Source: Takakia lepidozioides (Eukaryota > Plantae > Bryophyta). Taken from it: DNA of 64,000 nucleotides. Location: NCBI GenBank assembly GCA_030704615.1, contig CM060731.1, positions 54,002,001 through 54,066,000 on the forward strand, in the 5' to 3' direction. This document shows positions 10,866 through 41,389 of this stretch, in pieces. The notes beneath the pieces were generated by a model. The model had not been told where the DNA came from and made no database searches. It saw only the letters and a program-made list of their open reading frames with translations. The position numbers and the translations under genes are program-made. Each line of letters starts with the position of its first letter. Positions within the stretch are counted from its first letter, which is position 1.

Positions 10866-10920
10866 AGTAATTGGGCTGTGACTCCCTTCATGAACTTGCT
10901 CTATCTACTGTACCATTATG

Positions 10921-16160: not shown

Positions 16161-17659
16161 TTAAGATTCCTATTATCTTCCTTAGTTTATTTATGATACA
16201 TATAGCCCACTCTTGGCATAATTGTCGAGCTCTCTCTTCACGTTTTGAATATGAATAAGGTAAGTTGGCAACAGGCGTCTATGACGGAACACCCCATTAA
16301 CGCTTCTGTTAGTACCTATGACCATGCAGTGCTGGTCCCAAGACTGTCCATTTTTGTCACTTGGCAAAACAATCATTTGATATAACCCCCCAAAAAGTGT
16401 GATCGGTCATAGGGCTCTTGGTGTATACAAGCATTCTGATTGGTTCGACTTTGAAACCCTACAACTTTGTGTAGGATTCATGAAATCAAATAGTTCCAAG
16501 TTTGTAGGTTGCCCCATATGTGGGACACCTTATGAAATTTACCTGAGGTAAAAATGACAAAAATTCACAGTTAGATTTTTCACCATCGTTATTTGAATGG
16601 TTATAGGCCAACATACCCTAGTTGCGCGTAGATCCCTGTTGCACATGTATGCAGTGAGAAGACGATGGACGGCCTAACAAAAGGAGCATAATAAGTTTTA
16701 TCGTAGTCAATCTCATGGTATTGAGGGAAGCCTTTAGCCACCACTAGTCGAGCTTTGAACCAGTCAATTGTGCCATCAATTGAGCTTAATATAAACTCGT
16801 TTACATTTGATAGTATGTCGTCCTTGCCGGTAGATCAACCAATCGCCAAGTTTCACTCTTTTGAAGTGATTCAAACTCTTGAGCCACAACCTATTTGCAG
16901 TCCGTGCTATGTTTGGATTGAATAGCCTCCAGATATCGTTTTGGCTCAATAGGGCTAAAATTCCATTGGAATGCCCCTCGTTTTTAAGATATTAAGGTCT
17001 TAACGGCGCACGCTCCAGGACCGTGGCGAGGCCCATGCACAGCCCATCGGCCATGCCCATTGACTCATCCGCTGCAATGTGTGGTCGCCAAGCCTACCCT
17101 CCGTCTGCTCTGCCTCGCATGTGGTCGTCAATCTCGTAATTGAGTTCCCCTACACGGCGTCTGCCGCAGGCTGCCCCAGTTCGTTACAGTCTGTTTAGGT
17201 CTGTTGCGCAATCCATTCCTTCCCTAGCATTTGGACAGTGCATCTAGAAGAGCACTGTCGTGTACATACGTTGCGTCCCTGCCACCACGCGTTTCTTCTT
17301 CAAGAAACGTAAAACATTATGTTGCTCTGCGACTTGTGCGTTGCAAGTTCTCAAGCGTGTCTTGTGTACTGTGAAGTTCATGGAAATAAAAGCAACATGC
17401 ATGCAATGAGATAAAACACACTGAAAGCCTGCTTATACGCTCTCTTTGCCAATGTTTGCACGTTGAATTCCCGGCAATAGTAAAACATACGGATAGTGCA
17501 GAAAATGCATCCCCACTTCCCAATGGCGTGATGGGCCTACACTTCAAAAAAATTGCATGCCCGGCAAAAAAACCTTTGTAAACTTGCTACTCTAGCGGAG
17601 GAATATAGAGGGCGCCGTATTTGACCTGCTAACTCATTGTTGGAGCATGGGCTCTGGAC

Positions 17660-17887
17660 CAACCAACGGGGAGAACCGGCAGCTAGTTACATGCTAGCCG
17701 ACTGATTCTGAGGATTTCCGAGTGAAAATTGAAACCTTCGGAAATTTACAGAGTATGTTCACATAGGAAATTGACTATTGCAGTTACCATTAAGGGGAAG
17801 CAACCGACTCCCCAACCCACTTAGCCGGTTGGTTCTCAGAATGAGGGGCCATTGGCTGGTTCAACTGAAATTATTTCCCGGACGCTG
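17660..17887. mobile_element. Short (228 bp) relative of the hAT MITE family
   Basis: Shares both terminal regions with the ~810-bp MITE, 8-bp TSD CTCTGGAC. Confidence 0.88.
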
Positions 17888-18514
17888 CTCTGGACACCAA
17901 AGTGGTACCGGCCTCCAACATGTATCATGTGCACATTGAGGAAGGTCAAAAAGTAAAGACAATGCATTAGTGAGTGCAAGGTTGGTACTATGCAATATTA
18001 ATCCCACAAGTCCATGGATTCAAATTTATCATACCTTGTGATGATTTGCTCCAAATGTTGGGTCTCATGCAACAATGCATAAATGGCTTAGTTCTAACAT
18101 TCCCTACCGTTGCCACTCATTCTGGATCCCAATCTCCATCATAATGCTTGAATGTTGGCGCCAAGGTCTCGGGACCTTCAAACGATTCTAACAATTGATG
18201 CTTGTAGGACTCTCTATATTTTGACTTCTTTCTCTTTGGGCCTTTGTTGTTCGAGCTCCTACAACAAGTCATCTATGCTTCACTTTCGAATCCCCACAAT
18301 CGCTTTGTTGGTGCGCTTACCATTGCATTATTCTGATTTGTGCCACATATTATGCTTTCATGGTTCCACAACTCCATGGATATTGACTATATATTTCATG
18401 TCTAGGTATCAATGTTGCAATGGTAAATAATGACTAACAATATAATTTGCAAGGATGGTGCACATAATATTGGTCAAGACTGTGTTTTCACTAGGAACCT
18501 TTGGTACTCGTAAA

Positions 18515-19157: not shown

Positions 19158-20328
19158 TAAAGCACTTTGAATTTTTTCTCTTTGTTATTATCTGCTCCTT
19201 GTATAGCATTTTAGCGCGCTTGGCCAGGGCAGTGCATTACACGCCGGTGTAATGCCCTGGTACGCAAGGGCGGTGCATTACACTCCATACATTTCTTTGT
19301 TGCATGTGCTTTATGCAGGGGAAGCCCCCGAGTGGAGGGCATTCCTCGATATTTGGGCATTCCCTGGGGCTCCCGCCCTTGGGCCAGTGCCCTTATATCG
19401 AGGAATGCCACCTTCCCCTATACTTTCCCACCTTATTATCAGCACTCAAAACTTCACGTGGAATTGTGCTTATGTACTAGGTACGGAGGAATGTATCAGC
19501 ATTTGCTTGTGCGGCCTTTGCATGCGGGCTTTTCTTAACCCCTAAGGGCCCGCCATTGGGCAATTTCAGCCCCCAGAAAAGTAACATTTGAGGCTACACA
19601 CCTACGATATTAGATCCAAGATTTGAACCTTATCATATTCACCTTGCCTACCATGAACATCCGCCCAGCAAATTGGGGAGAAATTCACCACACGACCACA
19701 AACTTTTTAGTGTTTTAGGGAGATTTTCGTGTTTTTGGATTTTGCAAAGTATGAAACTTGAGCTTTGACGAAGCTCTTTGAGTGACAAAATGACTTTTCC
19801 CGCTCCTACCTCCCACAGAAATGTGGTATGATATCCTAAGTACTGTACAACTTTCAAGTAAAAACAGCCTTTTTCATTATTAGGTCCTTTGTATTTGCTT
19901 ATGTGGGGGGTTCCAAATGATCTCCACAGCTTAGCAAATCAAGGTCAGCCCATGCAAAAATTAACTCTTTTGTTAGATATCTCAATCCCCTTGGTGAGGG
20001 TCTGGAATACATTATCCCCATAGTGAGTCTGGTAAAAACAAACTGTGAATAGACAGCCAACCTTCTTGCATGCTGACCCACACGTTTTCTAGAATGTGAT
20101 AATTCATGAAAAATTGTTAACGTGAGAGGGGGGGCCACGAATTAACTGCAGTTAAAATATATTAACATCTACAAAAAGTACAAACCTGAAACGGTCTTGT
20201 GGGCCCTTGAGAAGTCAGTGACTCCCCAATGCCTCCAACTTACCATCTGAAGATAAAGTGGGCTCTGGCGGTGGGGTCAATCTTGTTATCACGAGATTTC
20301 GTTTTTGATCAGTGATCGAGATGTCACC

Positions 20329-20650
20329 TAGGGAATTCCAAAAAGGCCTTGATGTGAAATGCAGCGCAATTCACTTGATCAGATGCCAATTCAATTGAAC
20401 TAACCCTAATTTGCAATTCAATTGAATTGCTGACTGCAATCAATTGAATTGTAATCTATAATTTTTAACGCAGTTTTGTATATAATATATATAATATATT
20501 ATCATGTATATGTATATGTATATGTATCATATACACATATGCATACGAGAGTATAAGCTGAATATACATGTTGGCCCGTCTATTCCTGCTGCCCGTCCAT
20601 CCTTTGCTTGTGGTAAGGCCTAAGTCACGTAGCCTAAAGGAGAGATATAT
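20329..20650 (+). repeat. Left TIR of giant transposon
   Basis: Near-identical reverse complement of ~39431-39767. Confidence 0.92.
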
Positions 20651-20654
20651 AATA

Positions 20655-20916
20655 CACATATATACTAGTAGATGTATCGTCATTAGGTTGTAGCCCTGTT
20701 TGATATATCTACAGAGGTATAGTATTTCATTTTACAAGAAAAGTTGGCCAAATTAATCTATATTTATGCGGAGGTATCGTCATGAGACAGTAGCCCTGTT
20801 TAGTATACCACCAGAGGTATAGCGCCTGACTTACAAAGAAACCTGGTCAAATCAGCCTATATGCAGGTTGAGGTATCGTTATGAGGTAGTTGCCCTGTTT
20901 AGTATACCTACAGAGG
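20655..20916 (-). repeat. Inverted copy of ~2.5 units of the ~100-bp internal repeat
   Basis: Nearly identical reverse complement of ~35695-35955. Confidence 0.85.
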
Positions 20917-21952
20917 GACTGGCAACGTACGCATTCTTATCTCTGTTTTTATCCCAGTCCTCGCTTGTTAGATTCTACAGCTATTCATCGCGTAGCACTT
21001 GGCTACATGATTGTCTATTGTTTCTAGTTTACTCAATAAGAAAAGTGGGATAGAAATGTCAAGTGAGTTTTTCATGGTACGTGTCATGGTTGGGTGGACA
21101 GGAAGAGGCCAAGGAAGAGGCAGCAGCAGAGCTGACACATTTGGTAAGGCAACCGTGTCCATCCTGAGTATGAAGGATGCTGCACCCTCGGAAATACAAG
21201 ATGCTTCAAGTAAGTTCAAAGAGCTTTCTTCTCTTTCTGGTGTGCTGGATATGTATGCGGAGGACAATTAATATCACCTTAGGTGCCAAGGGAGAAACAA
21301 ACAACCAGACCCTATTTCATTTCATTTCTCTCTCTCTCTCTCTCTCTCTCGTGTTTCTCCCTATCCTCTAGGAAGCCTATTGACATTGGGTGGACTTGAA
21401 ACGGGAGTACATTAATGTCTCTGTCACTAAATGCCGGCCTTCTGACCTCGTGTCCTTGTTTGTTTCGACCTTAAGCGTTTTGCTTCAGGTAAGGTAGTGC
21501 ATTGGATTTAGTTGGAAAGCTTGGGGACTTTCCCTCTTTAGAATATGCCTACACGGGCCATTCCCTGCAACTCCCTGGAGTGTGATCTCTGAATGGTAAC
21601 AAGCGGACTCCTACCGCTTGGGGGCAGCCCCTCCGCCCAAATTGGGCAGTCGTATGCTCTGTCTAGCATACTCGGCACTTGGGCTCGGGTTGGTTCATGT
21701 GCTTAAACTTATGGCCTGCGAAAACAATCAAAAATTTAGCTCCTATCAACATCAACACTCCTCAGGGTGATCCCTGGGAATTGATTACTTATGCCAAATC
21801 TAGGGCTTCATGTGTAGTTTTTGGGGTGAATCCCAAGATGGACGATGTGTCCTTTAAAACTACATGCTCTACCTTAGGCTTGGATTTCATGGTTAATGGT
21901 ACCATCTCGAGACTTGATAACAGGGGTACGTTGAAGGTTGCAATGACCAAAA

Positions 21953-24886
21953 GTGCTTCTAATAGAGTCCCGCATCAATTCAATCTCAAATAAGTTCGTC
22001 CGTGATTTCTTGTTTGACAATTGTGAAATTATCAACAAGGGTTTGAGGTACGAGCATAGTATCTGGCTAAAACTGAATTTGAAGGGCGGCATGAGTACTC
22101 TGCTGGACCTCTTTGTCCGTTGTGTTTACATGCCCACAGAGGGGACCCTGTGTGCTGACGCAGACAAGGCCTCACAAGTTTTGAAGCTGGACTGTGCTTC
22201 GTTCCTTGCCAAAGGTCAGGTGGTACTATTGGGGGACTTCAATGCCTGGGTGGGCAAAGGGATCCATCAAGACGATATCATTGGACCTTTTGGTGAGGAC
22301 GAGCTGAATTCTAATGGCAGACGGTTAATTAACTGTCTAGAAGAGCTTCAGTTTTTGACCTTGAATAACAGGACAAGAGGTGACCAAGTGCAGTGGACTC
22401 GTGAGAAACCCCAAACTGGGGAACGTTCCATTGTGGACTATATCATAATGGACAAAATTTTGTTCCCCCAGTGTGCCGATGTGTTGATCGACAGAATTGA
22501 TATTGGTACCTCTGACCACTTGCTGGTTTGGACTGACATCAAAAGGTGTTTTCCCAACACCAAGAGATCTGTGAAACGTTCGATTCGGAGGTGGCGCATA
22601 GAAAAATTCCACAATGAGGAGGTCAAGGCTGAGTACGTCCAGGCCTTGCAAGAGGCTCTCCCTCATTTTGTCCAATCGCTCCAAGAACTTCAGTCACGCT
22701 CTGTTAACGCAATAAATGAAGCCGAAAGAGCAGTGGACTCTTGGGAGAGTTTCGTTTCCTCCGTGGCTGACAAGATCATTGGGAGGAAACTAATTGTCTG
22801 CGGTAGAGCAGTTAATTGGTGGACTAATGAGATTAAATTCAAGATAGCTAAGAGACGAGCCCTCTATAAACAGTGCTGCAATTTGGAAACCAACAGAGAA
22901 TTGTGGGCGAGGTACTACCAGCTCCGTAAAGATATCAATCAGCTTGTTAGGTCTCAGAAAAAATTATACTGGGACAAGTTATACAGTGAAATAAACTCAA
23001 ACCACCATGGTGGTAATGACAAGAAATTCTGCTTGGCCCTTCAACGTTTGTACAAACCGAAAAACGGTCAGCAAGTACAAGCGCTGAAGACTACTAAAGG
23101 TGCAGTGGTGACTTCATCGGTTGACATTGTCAAAACCTTTGAAACTCACTACAGTATCCTTGGCAGAACTTCTTGGTATAACAGTGAGGGGTCTTCTGCT
23201 GAATGGAGGGACACAGTTGGAAAAACTGTTCCTATGATTCAAAACAGCCTTGATGAACTGGAGTATATTTCAATGGCTTATAATGCTCCCATTAGTTCTT
23301 CTGAGATTCTCGAAGCAATTGAACATTTAAATGGAGGTAAAGCTCCTGGACCAGATGGTATTGTCAACGAGCTTATCAAGCACAGTGGCGATCCCATGAT
23401 AGAGGCCCTACTTCTCCTCTTTAACCTTCTCTGGAAGACTGAAATGATCCCCTTTCGCTGGCGACAGGGGGTCATTGTCAATCTATACAAGAAGGGTGAC
23501 AGAGAAGAACCGGGGAACTACCGTGGCATCACGCTCCTCAATGTTGTTGGCAAGACATTCTGCTTATTTATAAGCACTCGTCTCGAGGTTGATCTGGAGT
23601 CTACAGGTTGTTTCCACGAAGGCCAAGCTGGCTTTCGGCGAAACAGGGGCTGTGTGGATCATATCTTCACTCTAAGCCAGATTATCCAGGGAAGGAAAAA
23701 GAAGGGAAACCCACTTATGTCTTTTTCCTGGATGTCAAAAAGGCTTATGACACAGTGTGGAGAGATGGCCTATGGTTCCGCCTCTGGTCTTGTGGGATCA
23801 AGGGAAAGATGTGGAGACTTGTCCACAACTTGTATGCTCACACCAAAAGCTGTGTCACTGTTAACGGACAGAAGTCCAACTTCTTTGACTTGACCAAGGT
23901 GTAGCTCAAGGATGTACTCTCTCCCCTCTGCTCTTCAATGTTTTCATCAATCAACTCCTCGAGGATGTGGAAAGTGAGGGATTTGGGTTAAGGGTGGGTG
24001 ATACCACCATACCAGCCCTTATGTTTGCGGATGACTTCGCAGGCATAGGGGAGACTCCAACCAATCTCCAGGAGTTGATTGATTGCGCGAAGACATACTT
24101 TGATCTTTGGGGGCTAGAGGCTAATGTCAGCAAATGTGCAGTGGTAGCATTCAACGACAGAGGAGAGGGAGGAAGTGATCTTAAGTGGCAGTGGGGTAGC
24201 CAAGAGATCCCGGTCCTCCCTTCCTACACTTACCTGGGCGTTGAGTTCTCCTCCAATTGTAATTGGGATGCACATATCTGGAAAGTTGTTCAAACTGGCA
24301 AGGGCAAAGCACTGGGGCTCACTAAAATTTTCCACTGCAGAGGGGTCAACTCTGAGGTTAAGAAAACCATGCTTTGTCGCGTTATTAGACCTGCCTTGGA
24401 GTACGGATCTGCTATATGGGTTGATAACTCCAACCAGGCTAAGTCTCTAGAATCCATTCAAGTGGGGGTGCTTAAGGAGTGTATGTCAGCATGCTCCAAA
24501 ACAGCCAATGTGGCTGTTCGGGGTGAGTTTGGCATTCCGTCCTTCAGCTCCCGACGACATGAATTCAAGGTCAGATGGTGGGGTCAGCTGCAACATATGC
24601 CCAACACCAGATATCCTAAATTAATCGACTCTATATCTTGGAAACAGGACCGCCCTGTCAAACAGGCTAAGTCCTGGCAGAAGAGAGTACAAGAGATCCT
24701 CAAGGACCTGGACCTGTATCCACAAGGCTTGACCCTGCTGGATAAGTCTGACTTAGAGGCTCTAGTGTCCTCAACCATGTCTGTTGCCATGAGATTGTCT
24801 GATGAAAATGAAGTTAGGCAGAAAACTTCCCTGAACTTGTTTCCAGTCTGTGACATGGGGGAGGACATGTTGGATGACCTCAAGGA
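21953..24886 (+). pseudogene. LINE ORF2 (APE endonuclease + RT), frameshifted and 3'-truncated
   Basis: LGDFNA, SIVDYI, SDH, KAPGPDG, YRGITLL, QAGFR, DVKKAYD, GVAQG, FADD. Frameshifts near 23700 and 23895. Same family as 55052-57700. Confidence 0.9.
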
Positions 24887-25551
24887 TAAGAGTAGGTGTG
24901 AAAGTTACTTGACAAGCTTTTGTGCAAATTGTAACAATAGTCAGGGTTTACTGTGGGTACACGGAAGCTACATGCACCACTCGTGACAAGGTACATATCT
25001 AAATCAATCTGAGACATGCTTATTTCAGATGTGGTGCTCAACATGGTTAACAATGTTAGGAAATGAGTTTAGGGAGTTGGGCGGCTTCATTTTGTTTCTG
25101 CTGTCATTTCCATTGAAAGGGTGTGACTTGAACCTTGCTAGCCAGCAACATGTGTTTGCAGTGCTTGTATTCTTTGAAGATGTGAGCAAGAAGGCCCTAA
25201 CTGGTAAACTAGTCTGTGAGCAAAACACATGAAGAACAATTGGAGTGAAGGGGTTAGTGTTTGTGTCATGGCTCGTCTGTAATGCTTGGAATTAAGTTTA
25301 GGTTGATGGTCATTGTGACTGTTGAGTGTTTATTGTCTCCGCAATATTAGGTTGCTGGCCAATTTGCTAAAAAAAAGAGCCACATCTCAAGAGCTTGCAG
25401 GCAGCAGTAGACAACTTCATGGTGTGTTCTTTGCCCTATAACAACATTGTCTTTTTGTGAAGATAGGAATATGGGTCCAGTGCTACGAGCTCGGAGCACC
25501 GAGCTTTTCAAACAACATTGTTTTTTCCAGGAGACAGGAAGGTATCTAAAC

Positions 25552-26615
25552 ATGGGAAGATCCAACATAACAGGGAAGCGTATCAAAGTGAAGTCAAGAC
25601 GTCATGAAGCCCCTTCATCTTGCGTTGTGTCTGTTGTAGCAAACAGTGACGTCGTACCAACTCCTGTTACCTCGACAGAGCCGGCGCGTACAGGAGGAGG
25701 GCAAGGAGTGCTAGGAGGGCAAGGAAGTAAGTTCATGCTTATTAACAACTCTTGGGACTCCTAGGGGATTCCTAGTTTCAAGTACATTTTCATTCTTTTA
25801 TTGCTTGGATTGTATGCAACGTCTTTACTTCCACAGAGGTATTAAAAGGTGTCTTTTCTGTACAGAGGTATGTGCATTATGTGCAGGATAGGTGTAGTGC
25901 TAAAACACAGAAGTATAATAGATGCCTAGAGACAAATATCTTTACAAAGGTATCATCATGTAGGTGAATCTCCATTTCTAAAACCCTGGTATGCCTAATT
26001 TCACACATCCACTATCTATGTTATTTAGGTGGTTCGTTTGCACAAGAGGGGGTGCACTACAAACGGGAGAATGGACATTGGTTTTGTTTGATCTGCGGCG
26101 AAGGACCTTCCATGGGTTGGAAGGACAAACATAACTTCCAAAACCACCTTGTGGTAAAGTGTGGAGGTCCTCGCCTCCTTCCAGGTAAGCCTGGTCGCCC
26201 TACGGATGGGAAGAAGAGAAAACAAAATTACCATAGAACGAACATGAAGATCTATGGGGATGCAGATAAGAGAAAGAGGGTGTATGAGAACAAGGCGCGT
26301 TACAGGTTCAAATTGAAAGCGGAGCGACTGTGGGAAATGGCACAAGGTGGTTCTATGGCCATGGAAAGCAAGAGCAAGCGAGCACCATTGTTGGCAACAT
26401 TGTTCGATGAAGATGTGTACGACCACTTCGGGATTCGCAAATGGGGAAGGGGCGATTTATCAGCTAAGACCTTGGATGATATCGTGGGTGCGAATGCGAC
26501 TGGTAAGTGGGTGAGGAACAAACTTGCTCAGTACAAACCGATTAGGGGTTACAAGCAAGACTTGGCACGGATGAAAAGAATCTATAGGGATGGCAAGGAT
26601 TACTGGAAGATGTAG
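25552..26615 (+). CDS. Two-exon Zn-finger/AT-hook-like basic protein of unknown function (exons 25552-25726 and 26029-26615)
   Basis: Phase-compatible GT-AG intron. WFCLIC-x15-H-x4-C followed by KPGRP and K/R-rich stretches. Confidence 0.55.
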
Positions 26616-26996
26616 TTTTGAGACTTGTTTGTGTGTTTCTTCTTACTCTCTTTTTGACATTCTAGTTGCCTAAGAAAAGTGCCCAAATAATGGTACAAAG
26701 ATACGGACTACACTACTCCATTGTAGGGAGGCTATGTCGCTATTGTCCTACCTAGAGGAATGTGGTTTGCAGGCTGTGTAGGCGCCGGGTGGTTTTCCTA
26801 GCCTCAAGTATAGCTCCCAGGAACCTTTGCTAAATGGGTGCATACAACATAAAAGTTGTAGGCCGAGGCTATGTACATATTTTGAGGCTGTGGATACAGT
26901 GACTGCTTTAGGATTAAGCATGTAAATGGGTACATTGGGAGTCCAATTCACTTACTCTTTGGCCATGTTGCTGATCTGGTGCTTGTGCATTTGTAG

Positions 26997-27116
26997 GATT
27001 TTAAGCAGAAGTATCCAGACGTGATTGTGCCAAACCCACTAGAAGCCATTCAACAGCTGCGAAACAGGCAGTCGATGCTTCAGGATGTGGCCGATCTAGA
27101 CCTTTGTGACTATGTG
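26997..27116 (+). pseudogene. Isolated exon of an inositol-tetrakisphosphate 1-kinase (ITPK) gene
   Basis: After the acceptor TTGTAG the frame reads DFKQKYPDVIVPNPLEAIQQLRNRQSMLQDVADLDL, resembling plant ITPK HPEVTVLDPPDAIQHLHNRQSMLQDVADLNL. Confidence 0.75.
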
Positions 27117-27855
27117 GTTGGTTTTTCTCCAGTACACAGTGCCTTCAACCAGCTCTTATATCTATTTGACCTGGAGTTTCGGTTTAGGGGCATCAATTTA
27201 ATCAATTTTACTCACATTGAGAACCAAATTCTGAGTAACCAGTCATATTGCAGACTTAAGTTAATTTAAATCTCAGTGATTGAGTGAGTGAGTCCACGGC
27301 AATGCCTGGATACATGAGAAGTTGACCTGCATTTTGTTGTTTTCCATTTCTTGCAGCTTTTGGAATTTGAATATGGTCCTGGACGACCATCCGATCTGCT
27401 TCCTTCTTTTCATAGCCCCGTGTTTTCATTTTGCTCGTGTTGTTTGCAATCTGAGTATCCCGCAACAAAGAGGAAGATTTAAAGAACTTAGTTGATGAAT
27501 TATGTTCTGCATGATTCCCACATCTGAGGAACAACGGAATCACCAGTCATGAAGCAGGTTAGAGGTCTGCTACAAGTGGTCACTTGCGTATGGGCTAATA
27601 TGGACTTGGTAGTGATCTTCCTGTGCAGACCGTTGTCCATGTGCTTTTCAATCAATCTGCGGTTCCAATACAAAAGAATGTAGAGGTATTGAGCACAAGG
27701 GGAAGCAATATAACTTGGCATAGGGGCTGATATGGACTTGACATTGATCTTCCATGTGCACACCTCTCTCTATGTGCTGCTCATCCACCACTCTACCCAC
27801 TGCCTGCGTATCGCTGGTTTGACTAAGTGACTAGTCACTAGATCACCAGTCACAC

Positions 27856-27990
27856 CTTCATAGGAGTGGGCATGTGGCTTGCAAGTGTTGGGCTGCCAAT
27901 AACAAACCCACTACAACGTTGCACTACAACCATAATCTCATCACTATTGTAAAACTCAGCATTCATGCTCTCGATTCCCACTCCAGCCTT
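27856..27990 (-). pseudogene. Isolated exon fragment of a flavodiiron protein (FLV) flavodoxin domain
   Basis: KAGVGIESMNAEFYNSDEIMVVVQRCSGFVIGSPTLASHMPTPMK followed by a GT donor, resembling Flv1/FlvA KAGVAVESINCE..GFIIGSPTLGGHAPTP. Confidence 0.75.
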
Positions 27991-28679
27991 TCAAATTCCT
28001 CAACTTCCATTCAGCATCCCATGAACCCCACATGCAGCCCGAGTGTTATTACAAGCACGTTATGTGCTTTGGTAAATACTGTTGTTGGAATGAGGCAAAG
28101 CCCTCAAACCTTGGCCAAATGTTTATGCAAACCTCCTTAAACTGCTTGTGAGCTAAATGGGTTTGATGTGCATGCCAGGGCTAGCTCCATCTCATTTTTT
28201 GGGGGACCCTTTGGGAGACAGATGGCTTACTCAGAAGTGCTTCAGCTTCCTCTGATTCACTGGCAAAAGAAATATGGCTAGCTCTGAAAGAAACAGACAA
28301 TTTCAAACCTCACAATTGATGAATGGCTTCCCCTGCATCATCATGTACTCCCCTGGCACTAGTATCTGGCCCCCATGACACAACCCCAGAGAAAACAAAA
28401 GACATGTTCATTTCGAGAATTATCTCCAATAATCTTGTTTCGATACCCTTACAAAGGTATCATGTTGCAATTGGGCTGTGTGTTCGATACAGAGTTTAAT
28501 ATATCAACTCTTAGACGTTGATACTCTTACAGTGGTATCATGTTTGGTATATGTACATAGCCATATATTGGCACTATAAGGGCTTGGCAGTATGAAATTG
28601 GTTAGTGTCTCAAGGTGCAGATGAAACATGCTAACATATTTAGATTGTAAGCAACACCCACCAGTCAAACTCATCCTCA

Positions 28680-29155
28680 GAAGAGATTGATACACAAAAA
28701 TTTCTCAGGGTCGTTGGTGCGCAGGCTTTTGTCAAGGGCTTGATATCATCATCGGTCAACTCAAAGTCAAAGACATCAAGGTTCTACTTCAATCTCTCCA
28801 TCTTGTCTGACTTAGGAATGACAATTGTCTTGTGCTCAATGCCCCAGTGCATCGCAATTTGTGCCGGTGTCTTGTTGTACTTTCTAGTGTGTTTATAGTG
28901 TGTGAGAGAGAGAGGGAAGCGAGAGATCACGCCTTACATAGAGTTATGAATCACAACTGAAGTCAATAATTCATAAGGGAGCACTTAGGGAAGATGCAAA
29001 CCTGAAGAACAGCGTCATCAAGACACGAAACGGTGCCCAACAAATTCCGTGTTATCAACCCCACCACCAAATGGCGTGTGGGCAGTGACAGGTATCCCAT
29101 GCTTCTGGTAGAAATTCACCAATGATTCACGCTGGAAGTAAGGATAGGTTTCGAT
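28680..29155 (-). pseudogene. 3' fragment of an aldo-keto reductase (S6PDH/M6PR-like) gene with retained intron
   Basis: IETYPYFQRESLVNFYQKHGIPVTAHTPFGG, KYNKTPAQIAMHWGIEHKTIVIPKS, NLDVFDFELT, LRTNDPEKF, with stops and frameshifts. Confidence 0.8.
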
Positions 29156-30749
29156 GGTAGCTTAATCTTTGAATATGCCGGGTCAAAAAGATGTCGTAAT
29201 TTCTGCCAAACACATGCTGATTAGAAAGGAGAGAGCCCATCCTTGCTCTCTTGGCTTGCTGGTCTACAATTTCAATCAAATGCCAATACATAGAAGATAA
29301 AGGTATAGAAAACTGCAGAGATGAGGATAAAATAGTACAAGAAGGAAAACCAGACCGGGAGAAAAGAGAGGAAGTGCAAGGATTCCCCGAAGCTCAGTCC
29401 CAAACATTACATCCAGAACATAATCAAAACAAGACCTTGTCAATTCCTGAAGTTCGCATAGCAATGGACTTACAATTGCATCTGTCTCGCCAACAATATG
29501 CCGCTCCGTCATATCTCCTCGATGCAAGACCAGCAAACACAAATCTTCATTGTGGGTTGAAATCTCACCTAAGGTTAAGTTGGCAAAATAAAAAGGGTGG
29601 AAATAGATGGAAATACATAACATAATTTTGGATGGGTGTTAGGGACAACTTAACACACCAAATTACCGTTATTGTGGTTATTTTGAAGATGTTAGAAGGA
29701 GAATGGAGCCCATTATTAAAAGCCCATTAATATGCTAATAAGCCTGTTAAGAACCTAAAAAGATAACCACCATGAAGCCCATTATTGAAAGTGAACAAAC
29801 GGAACACGCGCTAGAAGTTTAGGACATCGCGCCATAATGACAGCAGCCAAAATTGAATCGAAATCACTTCCTGGCTTGATACCATTGTTTCTCAATAACT
29901 CCAAGGAAGTCAGCAACTCACTTCCTGGTGATGGAAGTATAAGGAAGGAGACTTCTCTCGTGTTCTTTTCAGCGAGTGAAGCCAAGTGAACATTCTTGGT
30001 CCATATCTGTTGAATTACAAAGACAGCGCACACACACCAACAAAGGCATTTCAGGGAAGGTGTCTCACTAGCATAACTCGCCCTGAACTCATCGACAGCC
30101 ATACTACCCACCCTGGCTTTCACTTCACGCTGCAACTACAAAAGTAAGTCTCCCGGGGACCTCTGTGCTTCTCTGCGAATTTACCACTTCCCTCTGCTCT
30201 CCCCTTCAACTCATCATGATGTCAATTGCATCCCCTCTCTCTTCTCCCATACCATAACCTCTCTCAATTTTCTATGTCAACGAGAGAGGAAAGAAGGAAA
30301 GAGAAAGCAGAAGTTTGTTGCGACCACAGTAGTGCGTCACAATGTAACCCCCAGTCTAAGAAACCCAAACAGGTAGAATGCTAGTCAATTTATTCCTTGT
30401 AACTGAAGCCCACCGCCAGGGAATTTCTCTACACTATCGTTTCTTATATATCATAGTTACAGTATCTTCATTCAGACTGCCGGCGCTCTCTGAAAAATGA
30501 CAAGCATTTATGCTCACATGTATAGCGTATCTCTAAAGTGGCCATATTGTATACCTCAAGTAAGCCAATCCAGGTGTTTTTTTCAGAAGTCTAGAGCTCA
30601 AGTAGGTTACTGAAGAATTAAGCCAGCACACAATGGAAGACTGGTAACCGTGTGACACTTGAGCATTGGTGACAAAACCCTGCCAATTCCTCACAACGTG
30701 TAAAATTCGTGAAAAATCCCCATTGTTTAATGGATCTCAACTCACAAAT

Positions 30750-31035
30750 GCACCAACCTCTATAGGTATATACCAAAGAGGATCACTACTACATAATGAC
30801 GATACCTCTACTAGCATATATAGCTAAGTTTCTTTGTAAATCAAGCGTTATACCTCTATTGGTATACTAATCAGGGCTACTACCTCATGACAATACCTCC
30901 ACATAAATATACACTGATTTAGCAAAATTTATTTGCAAATCAAACGCTATACCTCTATAGGTATACCAAACAGGGAAACTACCTCATGACGATAGCTCTA
31001 CCTACATATAGTCTAATTTTGACTTAGTTTCTTTG
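30750..31035 (+). repeat. ~3 units of the ~100-bp internal repeat, upstream of the HECT gene
   Basis: TACCTCT..GGTATAC.AA.CAGGG..ACTACCTCAT.ACGATACC units. Confidence 0.8.
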
Positions 31036-31314
31036 GAATGCAACAGATCTCAATGGATCTCAATTCTTACTTTTTTGGCAGGTTCACAAATGCGTGCACG
31101 ATATAGAAATGTCCAAACAAGATGAAGACTGGACGCACCACTTGCAGGATATTGACCCTGGTTGTGCATCACAAAACAATGAGGATTCTTTAGTACAAAA
31201 CTTGCCACAAATCCCGCGTCGAGTAAGTGTTTTGCATATCCACCTAGATTTGGATCTTCTTCAAGATCAAATGTACCGGCACCACCCCAAGGCCAAGGTC
31301 ACGACGTCCAAGGT

Positions 31315-34300
31315 ATGGCAAATGTACCAAGTCTTTGTGGACCTACTGAAATTGGCACTGTCAATGACTTGAATGTTTCTGTTCCTCGAAACATTTGCGA
31401 GTCGAGAACACAACGAACAAGACAGCCTCAAGCATCTTCTAATGTGCCTCCCAAAGATATTCAACGGCGCATCCATATGCTTCCAAGGTCAACAGAGTGG
31501 TCAACCTATCGTGAGGCTTTAACGCCATTGATTTCCAACTGGGTTCCAGACAACCCAGTTGTTTTGGTCTCTCTCAAAGCAAACCTTCAGTGGGGTGGGC
31601 AAATCTATCCCGAGCCATTCTGTCTTGGAACAGTGGAGTTTCAGATTGCTGCCCACTTTGCACAACTTGAGCCTCATCGTCAAACACCTACACCACGTGT
31701 GACAGGGTGTTTTTTCAAACGGACCAGGAGAGCAACAGGCAAATATTTTCTCGAGCCATTGATTCGAAAACGTGGGGCTCTATGGGGCCGATTGCCAGCA
31801 ACAACATTTGTTGTTTACATCCCTGATAGCAGCGAGGTTTCATATGTTCCTGATGTAAGCACAGTCCCAAGTGATGGAATTGTTGCTTATCAACAATTCC
31901 TAAGAAATCCACCTAAGAAGAGGGATAGAAGGTGTAGGGAGGTTGACAATGAAAGAAGGTCCAATGCCCATGGATGGCGATGTGGTAGTGCACAGATCAG
32001 GCCTATGGAGATTGAAGATTCTCAATCTCTGTCCTCATCAAACGATGGTGAACCTTTTCATATGGCCCCATCACAAGTTCAAGATGTTCATGTCACCCAA
32101 GTGCCCCAAGATGTTCGAAGGGTCGAAAGGCCTTATGGTATGACAACATCTCACATTGAAGCTGATAGTACGTCACAAGTACCGAAGCGTGTCAGAGGTT
32201 CAAATGGGGTAAGGCCTTCTACGACCCTGCACATCACGGGATTAAACAGTGATGTGTCTTCGTTTGGATTGATGGAACAATCAAGTGGCAATATTCCGAC
32301 TAGCAGCCTTGGAGATTCTGATTCAGATTTTATGAGTGAGCCGCCTCGAGGTGGATGTAGGAACGTGCAACGGGGGAATGTCCAAGGTCACTATAATCTG
32401 GCATTACCTGCATCACCAATCACAACAACGCATGTTGGTATGTCCTCCTCATCTAGTATGATTGTTAATGAGATGGACATAATCTCCTCAATACCCACTC
32501 ATTGTACATGGGCAGCTGAAGATGAAGTTCTGAACAAGATGGCAGAGACATGGATCAAACATCAAGAGGCATACTTCGAGGCATTGGGGGAACGTGATGT
32601 TAAATCTGCATATGAAGCACTCGATGTCCACAAGGATGAACAGGGATCCCAAGCTTTTTGGTCAGCTTTTGACATGTTTAAAGTTGAGCTCCATACAGAT
32701 TCTTTCAATGATGAAGTGTTGAGACGTATTGGTAACGAGCTTTTTAAAAGAAAAGAGCTTCGTAGGGGTTCCACTACATCTGAGGCTAATCTCAGTAGGG
32801 TTACTATGCACCCTTCCATGAGCATGTATAATCCTGGCGATATTCGAATTCAGTTTGAGCTCATGGCGCGACCTTTTTGGAAAGATTGGGATGCATGGGA
32901 TCTAGCTATCTCTAAGTCCTCGAATGTTGGTCTATGTATCCCAACAGCAGAAGAGATTCTACAACACTACAACATCAATGGAGGTTCTCTAGGTGATGAA
33001 GATCACACCTTCAGTCAAAGAATCCATGAGACATTGAAGTTATGTGCTTTTACCAAATTTTCAAGGGCCCACCTTGAGCTTATGTGTTGCTCAGACAAAA
33101 TTGAGACTCACCAAGATGAGGCGACACTTTTGCAATCAAGAGAGAAGGTTGATGAAGCCATATTGAAATACCAACGGTATTATATGAGTCAAATTGTTTT
33201 CAAGCCGTACAAAAGATGGTTGGGCTTTTCCAACATCACTATTACCAAGATTCCGGTGAGTTCATGCACTGTCATGATCGTATTTAATTTTGTAAGCTTG
33301 CTTTCACTTAGAATTAGACATTTCGAAGTTGTTGAAATTTCCGTGTTGTTTTTCAAGGTGACCCAAACGAAGGAGCTTCAAGCTTTCAACCTTGAATGGA
33401 ATGAGATCAAACATGAAAGAGCTTGCTATAGACCAAAGGTTGAATTTATTCATTGCAGCGGCATTGCTGAAAGATTGACTATCGATGAAGATGGTTTGCG
33501 TGATGCATGGCTTACAAATACTTGGAAGCAATTTTGGTCTACCTCTTTCGTAAGCAGTAAACACAAACTTTTTTCATGTCTTAAGATTATTTGTAATCTT
33601 TTGCTTTGATGCACATTTTGCATACTTAGGAATGTTTTTTGTGCTTTTTGCATTTTATGACAAACTTGAATTGTACTAGCAAAGACTGATGATTTTGTTG
33701 TTGGTTTTCAGAGCTACAATTCCATATTTGAATATCCTGATAATCTTCAAGGAAAGTTGTTGCATCCAAAATTGGATTCTGAGGTCATACGCACAGACAT
33801 TCAATTGGATGCGGTGAGATTTGGATTGCAAAGTCATTTGTTTTAGATTGACATGCATGAATTATTTTTAAAGATACTCCCATGACAGTCATTTCTTGTG
33901 TTTGAATGTTAGGTATCATTGTTGATTCTTACTATTTGTTTGTGCATATTGCAGGCCAAAATGCTAGGGCATTTGATCTTCATGCTCGCATCGAACGAAT
34001 TGGAAGTCTCAAGACCTTTTTCATTCGCAACTTTGGTCATGTTTTGTGACCAAGTCCCCGAGTCCAAAAACATGTCCGTTGGTGTGGAGCCCAAAATGAA
34101 AAAGGATTTAGAACGTGATTTTCGATTGGGCTGGGCCGCAAAATGGTCAATCTTAAATTGCCTTAGAAAATCAAGAGATGAGGCAATGAAATTGATTCGA
34201 AGACTCCAAGAGGATGAAACACATGAAGACTTGGCTTGGACATTCTCGGATTTCAATCTGACAGAAGAAAATTGGGAATCTGAAGTTGAGCACAAGATTG

Positions 34301-34793
34301 GAGCCATTGTTTGGAGTCATCTTTTCAATGGACGCAATTTGATTGTGAAGGCAATGCAAGAGGGGTTTTACATGGCTGTGGAACAAGCACCATGTGCACC
34401 CACCATAAAAGATCGAATGAAAGACAGTTTGAAAGGCAATCTCCTGATACAATGCGTGTTGTATTCAATGGTGCCTGTGCAATTGAAGCAAGTGATTTCT
34501 TGAGGAAGTGCATATTTGATGTATCTATATTGCCCCTCCAACAAAAATGGTTTCGAGATTGTGTGGATCAAATGACCTATGCTGAGAGGTCTCGATTGGC
34601 TATTTTTATCACTGGATTGGAGTACTTTGGCGGCAAAGACATCAATATACAACTTCTCAATCGACACGACTATCCATGCATTCAAGCAAGCACTTGCTTT
34701 CAAGTTCTATATCTTCCCCCATACAAAGATGCCTCAATGATGATGACGAAGATTAACTATTCTACCATGGATAGTAGTTATGGTCGTGCATGA
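31315..34793 (+). CDS. HECT-domain E3 ubiquitin ligase-like gene (exons ~31315-33255, 33358-33549, 33712-33812, 33955-34793; one frameshift near 34430)
   Basis: C-lobe WFRDCVDQMTYAERSRLAIFITG..IQASTCFQVLYLPPY..KINYSTMDSSYGRA* with putative catalytic Cys at 34695. N-lobe-like KVEF..TIDEDGLRDAW. GT-AG junctions visible. True start uncertain. Confidence 0.78.
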
Positions 34794-35559
34794 CATGTGG
34801 AGGTGAAGGGTGTGAGTCATGGCTCAAACAGAGGGGTTGATTTTGTGGTATCATAGATAATTGAAATGCTCTTGGAGTGGTACTGTGAGTGTGACATCTG
34901 GTTGAATGTTAAGTGTTACAAGTTCGCTGAGTAGTGCCATCTGGTTGTGGCCCAAGGATGGGAATCCATTTTTGTTGTCGGTTGTTACATTTCCAGCTGT
35001 TGGTGACTTTTGCACAAAAGTCATCAATGGATGAGGATTTTGACAGTGAGGTATAGCTGCGGTCCCCTATCTTCTTGCACCCATTAATGGAATGCTGCTA
35101 TACTGCATATTTAATATGGTAAGTGGAGTACTCTACTATAAAATGTTTATTAGCTAGTTTGACATTCTTATGCGCTGTATGAAGTGCTCTAATATGTTTT
35201 AGTCTTGGGGGAGAGGGTGGGAGAGAGGCCCACCTGCCGTATGATTTCTGTAAAGCTTCAAGACATTATTACATTGTAAATATCACCCCATGAGAAGTAT
35301 CACAGTTCAAGATTGTCTTCTTTGATGAATTGGTCATGCCCTGTTGTTTTCCTTGAAAGCTAGTGAAATCTCACACATGTTTTAGGGTTTATCCAATGCC
35401 ATTTTAAGGTTTAGAAACATCCACAGCATTACACAATTGGCAATAAGAAAGTGGGTAAGGTAACATGTGTTCACTAATTTGGGCACTCCTATGGTCTTAT
35501 GCAGATATGTCTGAGCTTTTGCTGTGCGGGAAGTCATTTTTTCAGCTGCGACCAGGGGC

Positions 35560-36400
35560 ATATAGACTGAATTATCTTAGGTTTCTTTGTCTTCCAGACA
35601 GTATATCTCTGTAGGTAAACCAAACATGACTATTACCTCTTAACGATACCTACAGCCTGATTTATCTTGAGTTTCTTTGGCTATCATGCGTTATACCTCT
35701 GTAGGTATACTAAACAGGGGAACTACCTCATAACGATACGTCAACCTGCATATAGGCTGATTTGACCAAGTTTCTTTGTAAGTCAGGCGCTATACCTCTG
35801 GTGGTATACTAAACAGGGCTATTGTCTCATGACGATACCTCCGCATAAATATAGATTAATTTGGCCAACTTTTCTTGTAAAATGAAATACTATACCTCTG
35901 CAGATATATCAAACAGGGCTACAACCTAATGACGATACCTGTACTAGTATATATAACTAAGTTTCTTTGTCAATGAAGTGTTATACCTCTGTCGGTATAC
36001 TAATCAGGGCTACTACCTCATGACAATATCTGCCCATAAATATACACTATTTTTGACATCAAATTTATTTGTAAATCAAACGCTATACCTCTGTAGGTAT
36101 ACCAAACAGGGAAACTATCTCATAACGATACCCTTACCTACATATAGTGTAGTTTTGACTAAGTTTCTTTGGAATCAAACGCTGTACCTCTGTGAGTATA
36201 CCAAACAGGGAAATTACCTCATAACGATACCCTTACCTACATATGGTGTAGTTTTGACTAAGTTTCTTTGGAATCAAGCGCTGTATCTCTGTGAGTATAC
36301 CAAACAGGGCTAGTACCCAATGACGATACCTCTACCTACATATAGACTAATTTACCAAAATTAACTAAGTTCCGTTGTAATCAAGTGCTATACCGCTACA
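35560..36400 (+). repeat. Array of ~8 degenerate ~100-bp tandem repeats
   Basis: A TACCTCTG-type motif recurs near 35694, 35793, 35893, 35984, 36086, 36185 and 36284. Confidence 0.88.
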
Positions 36401-37152
36401 CCTGCGCAAAGGGCGTCCATTCAGTAGAGGTTGAAACTTGACTTGGGCATCTCAAAGTAGACTCCTAACCTATCATGCCAAGTGATACCATTCATCATCA
36501 TACCTGTCATACCTATCATCATCATGCCAAGTGTAAGGTTGTTGACCACTTATGTGAGAAAAATAAATGTTACATGGAAGCAAAAAAATTCTACTTTGTG
36601 GTTGTACAGGCTACAGGAGTGTTCCAGAACCTGGAGAGATAGACCTCTCGGTGGCTATGGAAGGTATACAGCAGTTGGAGAAACCATGACTCCAATCAAC
36701 AGAACACAAGTTATCAGATTTTAAACTCAAGGTACATGGCATATAAGAGACAAGGGTGCAGCTATAAGTCCTGGTTGAATATTCGTGTCTCCATGAGTGT
36801 ATATTCAGATTTTTATTACTGTATGCAAAATTCTTAGATTATGAATAGAGGGTTCTTGAAAATGAGGCAAGTTGGTCATCATTGTCTCATATGTGGGGCA
36901 GACAAAGATTGTTGGAGATAAAAGGCGGCCTCATGAGCCTCACGCTGTGCACTTCCCAATGAAACCCAACAATTTCACAACCCTCCAGAGATCGTACAAC
37001 CTAGGCCCTGCCCCCAAGTAGTATGGTTTGATGTTTAGGGTGTATGGTTCAATATGGACAATGGATATGATGATGACATTTATTTAACATAAATCCTCAA
37101 AGTACGTGACATAAAATAATTATCTTTGAATGTGATTGTCCCACTTATTCAG

Positions 37153-38842
37153 TTAATCACAATTACATACAAGAGCTTGTGTAATTAAAAGTTGGAGAGC
37201 TTCCCTACTTAACACGGTATTACCAATGAGGTCCAATTGATCAAAATATCTATGTTCATGCGTTGCCAAACCACAATACCGAGACATGTAGTAGTGGAGA
37301 TGAAAACAAGAGATCGAATCCTTCCCAACCTTTCCAATTTCATAAGCTTGTGCACGGACACGAACCATGTCAGGAATGAGTTCAGCTCCTTTGGTAGGAA
37401 GGTCATGCAAACCACCTGCACATCGCCACCTTTGATTCCCACGAGGCCCCAAGTCTTGGTTACCAATGTGTCGGGGGTCTTCCCTGAATCGTGGATCATC
37501 AATAAGGTGGCTGGTCCATCTACATGATCAAACACATCACCACATTAGAATAACATTCCAATGTAAATTGTAGCTTAACAATGAAAGTACAAACAAGAGA
37601 AAACCATGAGCTTACCCATGCAAACGTTCATACTCGCGAAAGAAACGAGCAGGAACATGTGATCGACGATATCGACCGTTTTCATTAATCGTGCGAACTC
37701 GATGTCCATTCCAAATCTTCACGTATTCATCAACAGCTTCTTGTAGTATGGGCATATATACGTCAATAAAAGATTGTCGTTGCCACGGATCGTCCATATC
37801 CAAAATCCATCATTGACCATTGCTTGGAAGCAATTTTTGTAGTAGAACATTACCTTCTCCCATAGATGCCGCCAAAAGTGTTCAATCCTCTAACGTGGTG
37901 ATTACACCACACAAAGTATTAGGAATATGCACAACATTACACACTCAATGATTAATAAAGATGAACCAAGAAATATGACAGAAACGTAAAGTTGATATGC
38001 AAGATAGAATTGTATAGAACACTAACCTGATTGTGTGTAGAAGACCCAGTCAAGTACGGATTGGGTGTTTCAAAACGTGTGGCTTCAATGTGTTGTTTTA
38101 TAAGAGAGTGCTATACTGCAAAATCAGATCGAATTCGTAAAGGTGCTCCAAACTTGGAAACTGCATCGTGATATCATTTGAAAATGGTTTTTTCTTTCTT
38201 GTTTCTTGCAACGTTCGCCCATAAAACAAAATGAGAGGCCCCATCAATGCCAGCATGTACTCGAAGACCAAACATAATCAATTTGTCATAAGTTGCACCA
38301 CGAATTGCATACATGTTTTAGTTTGCCTACAATTTTGTGCGATATGTAATACAAGAAAACGTCTTGCATGTGCATCTTCAAAGAACATTAAGATGCATGA
38401 GATAAAATACTTACAGTCAATGTGCCATAGAGCCATAGGCATTGTCACATTATACTGAGTCCTCCGAATTGCCTGTGCCCTTCTCCTACGCTCATAATGG
38501 TAGGGTGAGATGATTTTCAGCTTCCCCCACCTTCCTTCGAGGAATCCGCCAATTTGACCTCCTTAAGGCAGATTGCACTGTTCTCATTCCCCAATTTGAC
38601 CCATTCTCTTCAATAGGAAGCAACTCTTGAATATTTTCATACAAGCGTTGGACACTCAATTCATGATGAACTTTGAAAGGAGACCCTTGGACTTCTGATA
38701 GCAATCTTCTCAATGGTCGTACATCATCAAAAGAAAGGGCAGTGGCGATTGATTTCATTGTGGCACCCTCATTCAACATTGCTTCCACATAAAGTACTAA
38801 ATCATCCACTACTTTGTCACCATCCAAATGGTTGTTTTCCAT
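37153..38842 (-). pseudogene. Intron-containing DDE transposase/integrase-core gene (IS3/IS481-like), decayed
   Basis: Manual splicing gives WGMRTVQSAL, IRRTQYNVTMPMALWHID|SYDKL..HAGIDGAS, FGAPLRIRSD, TGSSTHNQ|RIEHFW, YVKIWNGHRVR. D-D-E triad present, with two in-frame stops, frameshifts and one mutated acceptor. Confidence 0.85.
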
Positions 38843-39430
38843 GCTCACATGATCTGTCTTATCTCTGCTTAATAGCCCCAGTGCCAATGCCTTCGACCTT
38901 GCCCTTGTTGTAATTGTTTGCTGTTAATTCTGTAGTCACTGCATCCACTCACAACCCATAGGACTTATGTCACTAAAGTTCACATAGGCTATCAAGTAGA
39001 TGAACCAAATGTACTTTGAAACAACAACTACTCTATCCTAAAATGTATTAGCAAACCACAGTACACAGTGTGGGCAGGTTGAAGACAAACCATGTGACAA
39101 AACTCATGAGTCACCTGCACGTACACAAGAACTACAGCTTTAGCTAAAATGATATCTTTATCAATGATTGGGGGAACTCATGCCAATATGGGAATGTGCT
39201 TACTCATGGGCAGATCTTGTCATTTGGTGATCCAAGAAGGCTTCCATCATACATAGCGCCACCACCGCTCCACCACCGCTCAACCCTAAACTTGTTGTTG
39301 CATTCTTCTCTCGTTACTTCTCGTCCTCCAACTGATTTGATCCTTTCACTTTTAGGGCATCTCTGCCCTAAAAACCCTTCATCACTTCATTTCTCTCTCC
39401 CTTTCCCTCGCTCTCGCTCGCTCTCTAGTA

Positions 39431-39564
39431 TATATCTCTCCTTTAGGCTACGCGACTCATGTCGTGACTTAGGCCTTACCACAAGCAAAGGATGGACGGG
39501 CAGTAGGAATAGACGGGCTAGCATGTATATTCAGCTTATACTTTTGTATGTATATGTGTATATG

Positions 39565-39600
<36 letters not shown>

Positions 39601-39767
39601 GATAATATATTATATACAACACTGCGTTAAAAATTATAGATTACAATTCAATTGAATTGCAGTCAGCAATTCAATTGAATTGCAAATTAGGGTTAGTTCA
39701 ATTGAATTGGCATCTGATCAAGTGAATTGCGCTGCATTTCACATCAAGGCCTTTTTGGAATTCCCTA
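39431..39767 (-). repeat. Right TIR of giant transposon
   Basis: Reverse complement of the left TIR, differing by a few substitutions, small indels and (ATATAC)n length. Confidence 0.92.
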
Positions 39768-40574
39768 GTCACCCTCTATGTATATATGACGCCTATCAAA
39801 GGACTGTAAATTATGGTGTCTCTTGACCCCCAAGGGCTACCTACTGCCTTCCAGCATGAAGGTGGACACCTTCGTGACACCAATACCACAAGCACTTCCG
39901 AGGTGGTATGTGCCCATTACCATTGGGCCACAACTTGGTTGTCAGATGTCACCATGTCCCTGTGGTATAGGGCAAAGCGTTTGATGTGAAGGCAGCGTGT
40001 CTCACGTCCACATGGGGAGCGGTATCCAAAATCTTGTACTTGTGTTTATGTCGGTGGCGGCGCACCGACATGGGCACAACGAGGCCACATTGGTGCTTCC
40101 AGTTGTTGCAATTCTATCTGCTCGGGCCCACCTCCATAGATACTTCCATAGCTTCTCCTCACTCCGCCTTGTGACTTGTCCACACTACACACATCATTGA
40201 CTTCATAGTAAACTTACTAACATAATGAACAAAACAACAGAATCATAATTACAATTAAGCATAATCGACAACATAATAAAGGCACCCCCTTGAGGGACTT
40301 CGAGATACTTCGGAGGATTGTGTGAAAATGTTTGATCTGCAGGACGCTCAAGTGCAGTGTTGATCGAGGACCTCAGTGGGGGTTGGGATGCAAATGAATA
40401 TCGTCGTTGGTTCTCTGAATGCTTGCCACGCAAGTGGGTGGCAATCGAGATTGTAGTTTTGAATTCTTCCACAACAGCACGGATTGTTGGAGGAGGGAAC
40501 TTGAGAGTAATAAGAGGGCACGTCAGAGAATTCCTCGGATCTGCCCCGAGTGTTTGAGATGGATGAGATGGATC

Positions 40575-41389
40575 CAACGTCCGGGGAGAACCGGCAGCCA
40601 GTTACATGCTAGCCGACTGAATTCTAGAATTTCCGAATGAAATATGAAACCTCAGGAAATGGATCCGAGGGAAAAAATGGCCGAAGTGGAAATCAACCGG
40701 GTGCCCTACTTTTAGGAAGGATATTTGCCTTTCCATTTCATTACAGACAGGAAATCTGCCTTAGTTGGCAAGGCCTGGACGGATTCCGGCCCTTCTTATA
40801 TTACAAAAAATGGAAATGGCCGTCGAAGTCCACCACATGGCAGAAATCCAACGTGCCAGGCCGGGTTACATCCAAGGAAGGGCGTTTAGGTGAAAAAATA
40901 TTGAACTCAAAGAGGGCGGGCCGCGGGCAAACCCTACTAAGTCTGGACGTTGCTCTCGCAGCCCCAGCCCCACGCCTGCTTGCACTCGCTGCCTGCTATC
41001 ACAGCTCACCTGTCCACGCGGGTTCAATTCTTGGCCTCCATGTGGTTTGAAGGCATTGACAGGTCCAACTTCTATAAGGATACAATGTTCTTCACTTGTT
41101 TGAATTGCTTAAAACTGGTTGTGATTATTTATTATTATTATTATTTACTTATTGTTGTGCATTTGACACTTGTGTTGTCAACCGGTTGATATTTATAAGG
41201 GCCGGATTTATAGCTGAACACAAAATAAATCATTAGGAATATTACCGGTTGTAAAGAAATTATCTCAGAAATTGACCGGGTATAGTTACCACTAAGGGGC
41301 AGCAACCGAGTGCCCAACCCACTTAGCCGATTGCTGCTGGGAATGAGCGGCTACTGGCTGGTTCAACTGAAATTATTTCCCGGACGCTG
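40575..41389. mobile_element. hAT-type MITE, copy 3
   Basis: Same family, 8-bp TSD GATGGATC, ~0.5 kb upstream of the second lectin gene. Confidence 0.92.

Follow-up and report, generated by a model that had tools for sequence, protein, structure and literature searches.

A probable GingerRoot/IS3EU transposon and its co-travelling ubiquitin-like-HECT gene in the moss Takakia lepidozioides

GingerRoot elements are the described plant transposons closest to the locus reported here. According to their original description (Cerbin et al., 2019; PMC6839031), those of Selaginella lepidophylla are 3.9–12.9 kb long, generate target-site duplications (TSDs) of 6 bp, mostly end in TA..TA, possess terminal inverted repeats (TIRs) of 100–150 bp and in 29% of cases contain intron-bearing fragments of host genes; 18 Bryopsida species yielded related DDE reads, and two mosses transcripts. 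GingerRoot and IS3EU form one lineage with 99% bootstrap support (PMC10045372). We analysed a stretch of 64,000 nucleotides of T. lepidozioides (GCA_030704615.1, contig CM060731.1, positions 54,002,001 to 54,066,000 of the forward strand), which is called the window here and from whose first letter all positions are counted. The segment at 20329–39767 is very probably a degenerate member of a GingerRoot/IS3EU family of cut-and-paste transposons that is present in many copies and travels with a gene encoding a ubiquitin-like (UBL) domain, a helical domain and a HECT domain. A preliminary description of this DNA, made from the sequence alone, had recognised an IS3EU-type DNA transposon outside the hAT, MULE, CACTA, PIF and Mariner superfamilies, with which the ends, the TSD and matches to Pfam family PF24764 agree. 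It had also suspected a type undescribed in plants, but GingerRoot is already known from S. lepidophylla and mosses (PMC6839031, PMC10045372). Its description covers the same ends, TSD, transposase and gene capture (PMC6839031), and a plant family already described with the same architecture was what the preliminary description itself had named as refuting its suspicion. The superfamily is thus not new to plants; what is new is the conserved UBL-HECT accessory gene.

The element spans 19.4 kb and is abutted at both ends by the hexamer GTCACC (20323–20328 and 39768–39773, forward strand), a perfect 6-bp TSD. Its left TIR (20329–20654, plus strand) begins with TAGGGAATTCC and its right TIR (39426–39767) lies on the minus strand; both are about 330–340 bp long and have TA..TA tips. 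These TIRs had been described as near-identical over ~320 bp. Both they and the TSD are present, but 315 of 343 aligned positions are equal (92%), and identity is complete over the first 111 nt. The window contains just two exact matches to the 20-nt terminus, where 0.01 would be expected by chance, and contigs from two sequencing runs, X6 and X7, end at 39767 with other flanks, which confirms the terminus and places such ends at different sites. A paralogous sequence at 6356–8140 had been proposed as an empty-site control. This comparison holds on the left, where the flank resembles 6352–6429 (81%) as far as the target hexamer, which is single at the paralogous site (GTCGCC, 6424–6429); on the right, clear homology restarts only at 39981, past a separate high-copy repeat.

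The transposase gene lies near the right end on the minus strand and comprises four coding exons, which together encode about 440 aa counted from a probable ATG at 38842. Exon 1 (38415–38938) ends with the motif WHID, exon 2 (38027–38292) contains RSD and GSSTHNQ, exon 3 (37616–37889) contains RIE..WNGH including the catalytic E, and exon 4 (37153–37519) ends with a stop codon at 37155–37153. When the spliced gene models were searched exon by exon, three pieces of the transposase matched PF24764 (rva_4) in an order collinear with the model, so that the spliced DDE integrase-core gene reported earlier for this position stands. WHID, which holds the first catalytic D, lies about 140 residues past the probable ATG, within the 100–300 residues characteristic of IS3EU/GingerRoot. 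Counted by eye, approximately 54 of 117 residues (~46%, one gap) are identical between the core and the published DDE region of the GingerRoot Sl-GR-005. Neither the translated exons nor the Pfam scans showed an HHCC motif, a GPY motif or a chromodomain, no relatives of the core were present in viral contigs, and a homolog search with exon 1, limited by the shortness of the query, returned no match. A 108-aa open reading frame (ORF) at 37209–37535 was considered as exon 4 and rejected; it is in the wrong frame, and homologs align to the other one.

Five lesions interrupt this gene: frameshifts near 38518 in exon 1 and near 37803 in exon 3, two in-frame stops in exon 2 near 38176 and 38113, and the loss of the splice acceptor at 38293. 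Because of these and a further frameshift in the HECT gene, the 19-kb copy at 20329–39767 is dead, a state that the earlier reading had missed. In a DNA run, single contigs over the transposase reach a depth of ~600, compared with ~25–33 in low-copy contigs, and this difference suggests, as a rough figure, about 20 near-identical transposase copies in the genome. These high-depth contigs are open at all five lesion sites of the window copy. A contig from run X6, which is guessed to be RNA, joins 38415 to 38292 with the intron 38414–38293 removed, and others stop at exon edges; the element family is therefore probably transcribed and spliced. With a family that has seemingly been both amplified recently and transcribed, intact copies should exist.

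The element matches GingerRoot/IS3EU on every feature tested, namely TA..TA ends, 6-bp TSD, DDE core, the position of its first catalytic D, the lack of HHCC, GPY and chromodomain, and multiple copies. The features in common with GingerRoot (PMC6839031) include the GC-richness of the TSD along with the TA..TA termini, an integrase-related DDE core with GSSTHNQ(K/R)IE.FWRHL.EKV..YYK, intron-bearing fragments from more than one host gene, and moss transcripts. IS3EU elements of animals and fungi, which belong to the GingerRoot lineage, likewise have TA..TA ends and a 6-bp TSD (Repbase; PMC10045372, PMC12730594). Some features would instead fit another integrase-like group (IS481EU, Ginger1/2 or Maverick/Polinton) or a new superfamily: with 19.4 kb (about 16 kb without an internal retrotransposon piece) and TIRs of ~330 bp, the element exceeds the plant GingerRoots described so far (3.9–12.9 kb and 100–150 bp), to whose features it adds arrays of 99-bp repeats and the UBL-HECT gene, a second gene absent from the accessible part of the published account (PMC6839031). 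However, TA..TA ends combined with a 6-bp TSD are the signature of IS3EU/GingerRoot, and the core is ~46% identical to a GingerRoot DDE region. IS481EU elements have TSDs of ~4, 15 or 25 bp (PMC10045372), and Ginger1 and Ginger2 terminate in TG..CA (PMC6839031); the element fits neither. Inspection of the span showed no ORF for the protein-primed DNA polymerase B of Maverick/Polinton, and termini of the AG..CT type are absent. A placement outside the GingerRoot/IS3EU lineage is considered highly improbable.

The second gene of the element (31315–34793, plus strand) has at least four coding exons and an uncertain 5' start, possibly near 31109, and is convergent with the transposase gene. It encodes a UBL domain, a low-complexity linker, a helical domain and a divergent HECT domain; a frameshift lies near 34431–34440. 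The HECT ligase gene that had been noticed between the TIRs is confirmed by a Pfam match (E 1.8e-9, 34311–34790), which is limited to the C-lobe (Pfam positions 179–297 of 306) and in which the catalytic Cys is present. The presumed N-lobe region is of about the right length and conserved among elements, and Pfam and PDB sequence matches are confined to the C-terminal part. The N-terminal domain is predicted to fold like ubiquitin: its model (predicted local distance difference test, pLDDT, 79) retrieved ubiquitin-like domains as nearly all of its 50 best structural matches, with Z scores of 5.4–6.7, which are below 8 and not decisive alone. The middle helical domain (pLDDT 76) had no convincing structural match. 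Plant hosts encode six conserved HECT subfamilies with about 6–12 genes per genome (PMC3712016). The host proteins UPL1–8 likewise have a HECT C-lobe with catalytic Cys, but the element's gene differs from them by an N-lobe that is unrecognisable by sequence, a novel helical domain, its multiple copies and its location within an element.

Given that GingerRoots take up host gene fragments (PMC6839031), one might regard the HECT gene as a passive capture, like the inositol-tetrakisphosphate 1-kinase (ITPK1) and aldo-keto reductase exons of the same element, and without a role for the latter. The window copy is indeed frameshifted, and one copy in Ceratodon purpureus has no transposase nearby. 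The gene is, however, a whole multi-exon gene with shared exon boundaries that also neighbours the transposase in six other elements, where its protein is 30–55% identical. Its CNG ratio (0.60) is near that of the transposase (0.51), whereas host exons outside the element have ratios of 1.0–1.1; an orphan zinc-finger ORF of the element has 0.56 and the long interspersed nuclear element (LINE) within it 0.91. The CNG depletion of the element's genes fits long residence within methylated transposon DNA. Moreover, against the background of six conserved host subfamilies (PMC3712016), there was no named host UPL among the homologs looked up. These points, together with the purifying selection described below, largely refute a passive capture, which we regard as very unlikely. 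The preliminary description had counted the gene as part of a multi-gene cargo; it is not cargo in the Pack sense but a conserved second gene found in six related elements with the same transposase.

A search with the N-terminal part of the HECT gene yielded 30 homolog clusters at 27–41% identity. Seven distinct loci were fetched via such homologs, and in five of them (L001, L003, L004, L006 and L007) the same transposase lies 2–5 kb upstream in tandem orientation; L002 retains a remnant of transposase exon 4. Conversely, L010, which was retrieved by the transposase alone, carries the HECT gene downstream. L001 is a complete element of 13,286 bp with the TSD TCCATG and TA..TA ends TATGGATTGCCAAAAGGGCC, a terminus very like that of the window element; the terminal motif is common to L003 and L006, and L003 ends in TA..TA. 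The exon boundaries of the HECT gene are shared across elements, and the catalytic Cys is retained in the window and in all six loci with a recovered C-lobe. Where measurable, the ratio of non-synonymous to synonymous substitution rates of the gene is 0.11–0.39, and elsewhere synonymous sites are saturated; judged from these alignments, the gene is under purifying selection. It evolves faster than the transposase: relative to the window copy, identity is ~30% for the HECT gene and ~60% for the transposase. Either gene divides the elements into the same two groups. The comparisons identify the UBL-helical-HECT gene as a long-standing second gene of the element that has stayed paired with the transposase through deep divergence. 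A ubiquitin-ligase-like gene has thus been retained under selection over a divergence that saturates synonymous sites, outpacing the neighbouring transposase. Literature searches for HECT genes paired with IS3EU or with Zisupton found no paper. Added here to what is known of such elements are complete copies from other assemblies whose termini agree, evidence for spliced transcripts and the ubiquitin-like fold. For annotation, the pairing advises caution, as divergent HECT genes of moss genomes can be transposon-borne.

Two of these loci deserve separate mention. The 11.7-kb element in L003 (1187–12855) is flanked by the hexamers GTTGGT and GCCGGT, a decayed TSD with two C-to-T differences. 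In L006 (456–12491) the transposase is present twice in tandem, and the HECT gene is without three introns found in other elements, which suggests intron loss.

Several points weigh against the interpretation as a GingerRoot/IS3EU element with an ancient ligase gene. The placement was made from shared features and a by-eye alignment of the core, the copy number is taken from contig depth and is hence rough, and the nature of X6 as an RNA run is a guess. Of the HECT domain, only the C-lobe is recognised by sequence, so that E3 activity is putative. The more distant transposases of L011 and L012 have no HECT gene in view, on contigs that stop ~2 kb downstream, and no transposase lies within 10 kb of the HECT copy in L005. 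For co-divergence across six elements, a Mantel test was no more than suggestive (r 0.44, p 0.06); for L006, the two transposase segments in the divergence comparison were drawn from its two separate transposase copies. The L005 copy (10001–12459; C. purpureus, GCA_014871385.1) is a partial UBL-HECT gene, either a remnant or an orphaned copy.

As in related elements, the transposase of ~440 aa would bind the TIRs, excise the element and insert it at a 6-bp staggered cut, and the window copy could be mobilised only with transposase supplied in trans. The HECT protein would be an accessory E3 ligase that selection maintains because it benefits the element. There is good support for a role of the gene in the service of the element, and its product is likely to be an active ligase. 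Plant precedents for TIR elements with their own accessory protein are VANDAL with VANC, a Mutator element, and MuDR with MURB (PMC10398659, PMC12973397); they belong to another transposase superfamily, and neither VANC nor MURB is a ubiquitin ligase. VANC nevertheless sets a precedent for an anti-silencing role of an element-borne protein (PMC10398659, PMC12973397). Fungal IS3EU elements stably carry TET/JBP and alpha-kinase genes (PMC12730594), in contrast to the HECT ligase gene found here. Among the roles conceivable if the gene serves the element, ubiquitination of a host silencing or chromatin factor, by which the element would be kept expressed, is ranked first, although it falls somewhat short of an even chance; this ranking follows from the analogy to VANC and to fungal TET/JBP and from the faster evolution of the HECT gene. 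Turnover or stripping of the element's own transposase comes second and is distinctly less likely, and a non-catalytic adaptor function is third and more doubtful still. Rather unlikely, in our estimate, is the most specific scenario, a moss GingerRoot lineage with its own active UBL-E3 ligase that degrades a host silencing factor and is perhaps guided to the 99-bp arrays by the zinc-finger protein. In VANDAL elements, the targets of VANC are located in repeated motifs within the element. Should this scenario apply, it would constitute transposon counter-defence via the ubiquitin system, for which literature searches found no precedent; with an active ligase, the family would offer a testable instance of a DNA transposon that exploits the ubiquitin system, whether in opposition to its host or in concert with it.

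The interior of the window copy includes three arrays of 99-bp repeats. Array A (35561–36397, plus strand, about eight units) separates the 3' ends of the transposase and HECT genes, array B (30756–31039, plus strand) lies directly 5' of the long HECT exon, and array C (20658–20916, minus strand) is an inverted copy, 97% identical, of 35696–35954. The left arm (20329–20916) repeats the right TIR in inverted orientation and continues, across a microhomology of ~11 bp, directly into part of array A, with the transposase skipped. TIR, 259-bp internal repeat and LINE are each 2.7–3.1% diverged from their partners. This structure, with divergences of ~3% throughout, fits template switching during gap repair, and the left arm may have arisen by the same process as the capture of host exons, which would have occurred at the DNA level and most likely by such switching. 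The same observations lend some weight to the possibility that the 19.4-kb span arose once, as a composite or rearranged copy, in which one end is present twice around DNA that was acquired once and the convergent gene order stems from an inversion between the 259-bp repeats. All six outside elements are tandem and the window element is convergent; inversion between the internal repeats could be the source of this order, and flipping 20917–35695 restores the tandem arrangement. The perfect TSD, on the other hand, indicates that both ends were inserted together. We regard a one-off composite as possible but improbable; it is compatible with assignment of the element to GingerRoot/IS3EU.

Repeat arrays, a LINE piece and host exons had all been listed between the TIRs, and all are present. 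The captured exons encode part of ITPK1 (26997–27117, plus strand; a weak but specific match, E 0.034, with 4/4 matches being ITPK) and, with introns, part of a mannose-6-phosphate reductase-like aldo-keto reductase (28643–29161, minus strand; E 5e-12). They are Pack-type captures of host DNA, as already reported for GingerRoot (PMC6839031). Two ORFs at 29279–30135 (minus strand), without Pfam or PDB match, are probably host fragments as well; a by-eye impression that the one at 29785–30135 is mTERF-like had no support from either database. No flavodiiron fragment was found in the element pieces scanned, and Rfam gave no match within the element. The supposed zinc-finger gene is a CNG-depleted ORF of 187 aa (26052–26615, plus strand) with a C2HC-like pattern, C-x2-C/H-x4-C, and a basic region. 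The pattern is real, but the ORF is an orphan: it had no Pfam, Atlas or homolog match and no counterpart in related loci, and it was rejected as a conserved accessory gene.

The LINE is a passenger, either nested in the element or captured by it. This APE-RT piece (21370–24885, plus strand, 5' limit approximate) is 3'-truncated at 24885 and shares 96.6% identity with a copy at ~55050–57704 that is bounded by a TSD. Without its ~3.4 kb the element measures ~16 kb, so that the 'giant' size claimed previously is real as a span and partly inflated by this piece. The copy at ~55050–57704 (minus strand) is 5'-truncated, lies in an intron of a valyl-tRNA synthetase gene and has the target duplication TCTAGGAATGAGC; a similar CTCTAGGAA occurs close to the 5' side of the transposon-borne copy, a likeness that hints at a target preference of the LINE.

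The right flank (39774–39956) contains a very high-copy repeat of ~140 bp (39806–39943) and a second AGATGTCACC near 39947, for which reason we place the element at the margin of a small insertion that was already there. The paralogy that appears to link this flank with 6356–8140 is in large part explained by an 815-bp repeat, probably a young non-autonomous element, with three copies 97–99% identical (6606–7419, 12068–12874 and 40574–41389) and a partial one near 17655–17890. Bulb-lectin/S-locus/PAN genes near both paralogous flanks (8334–9422, minus strand; 41863–44154, plus strand) suggest an old local duplication. The former is flanked by an inverted repeat of ~240 bp (6043–6284 and 10921–11148) whose arms are 76% identical and separated by 4.7 kb; they may be the TIRs of an old element or a small element present twice. 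Finally, an uninterrupted Ty3/Gypsy gag-pol ORF of 1541 aa (179–4804, minus strand), with a chromodomain-like end as judged by eye, apparently belongs to a young long terminal repeat retrotransposon.

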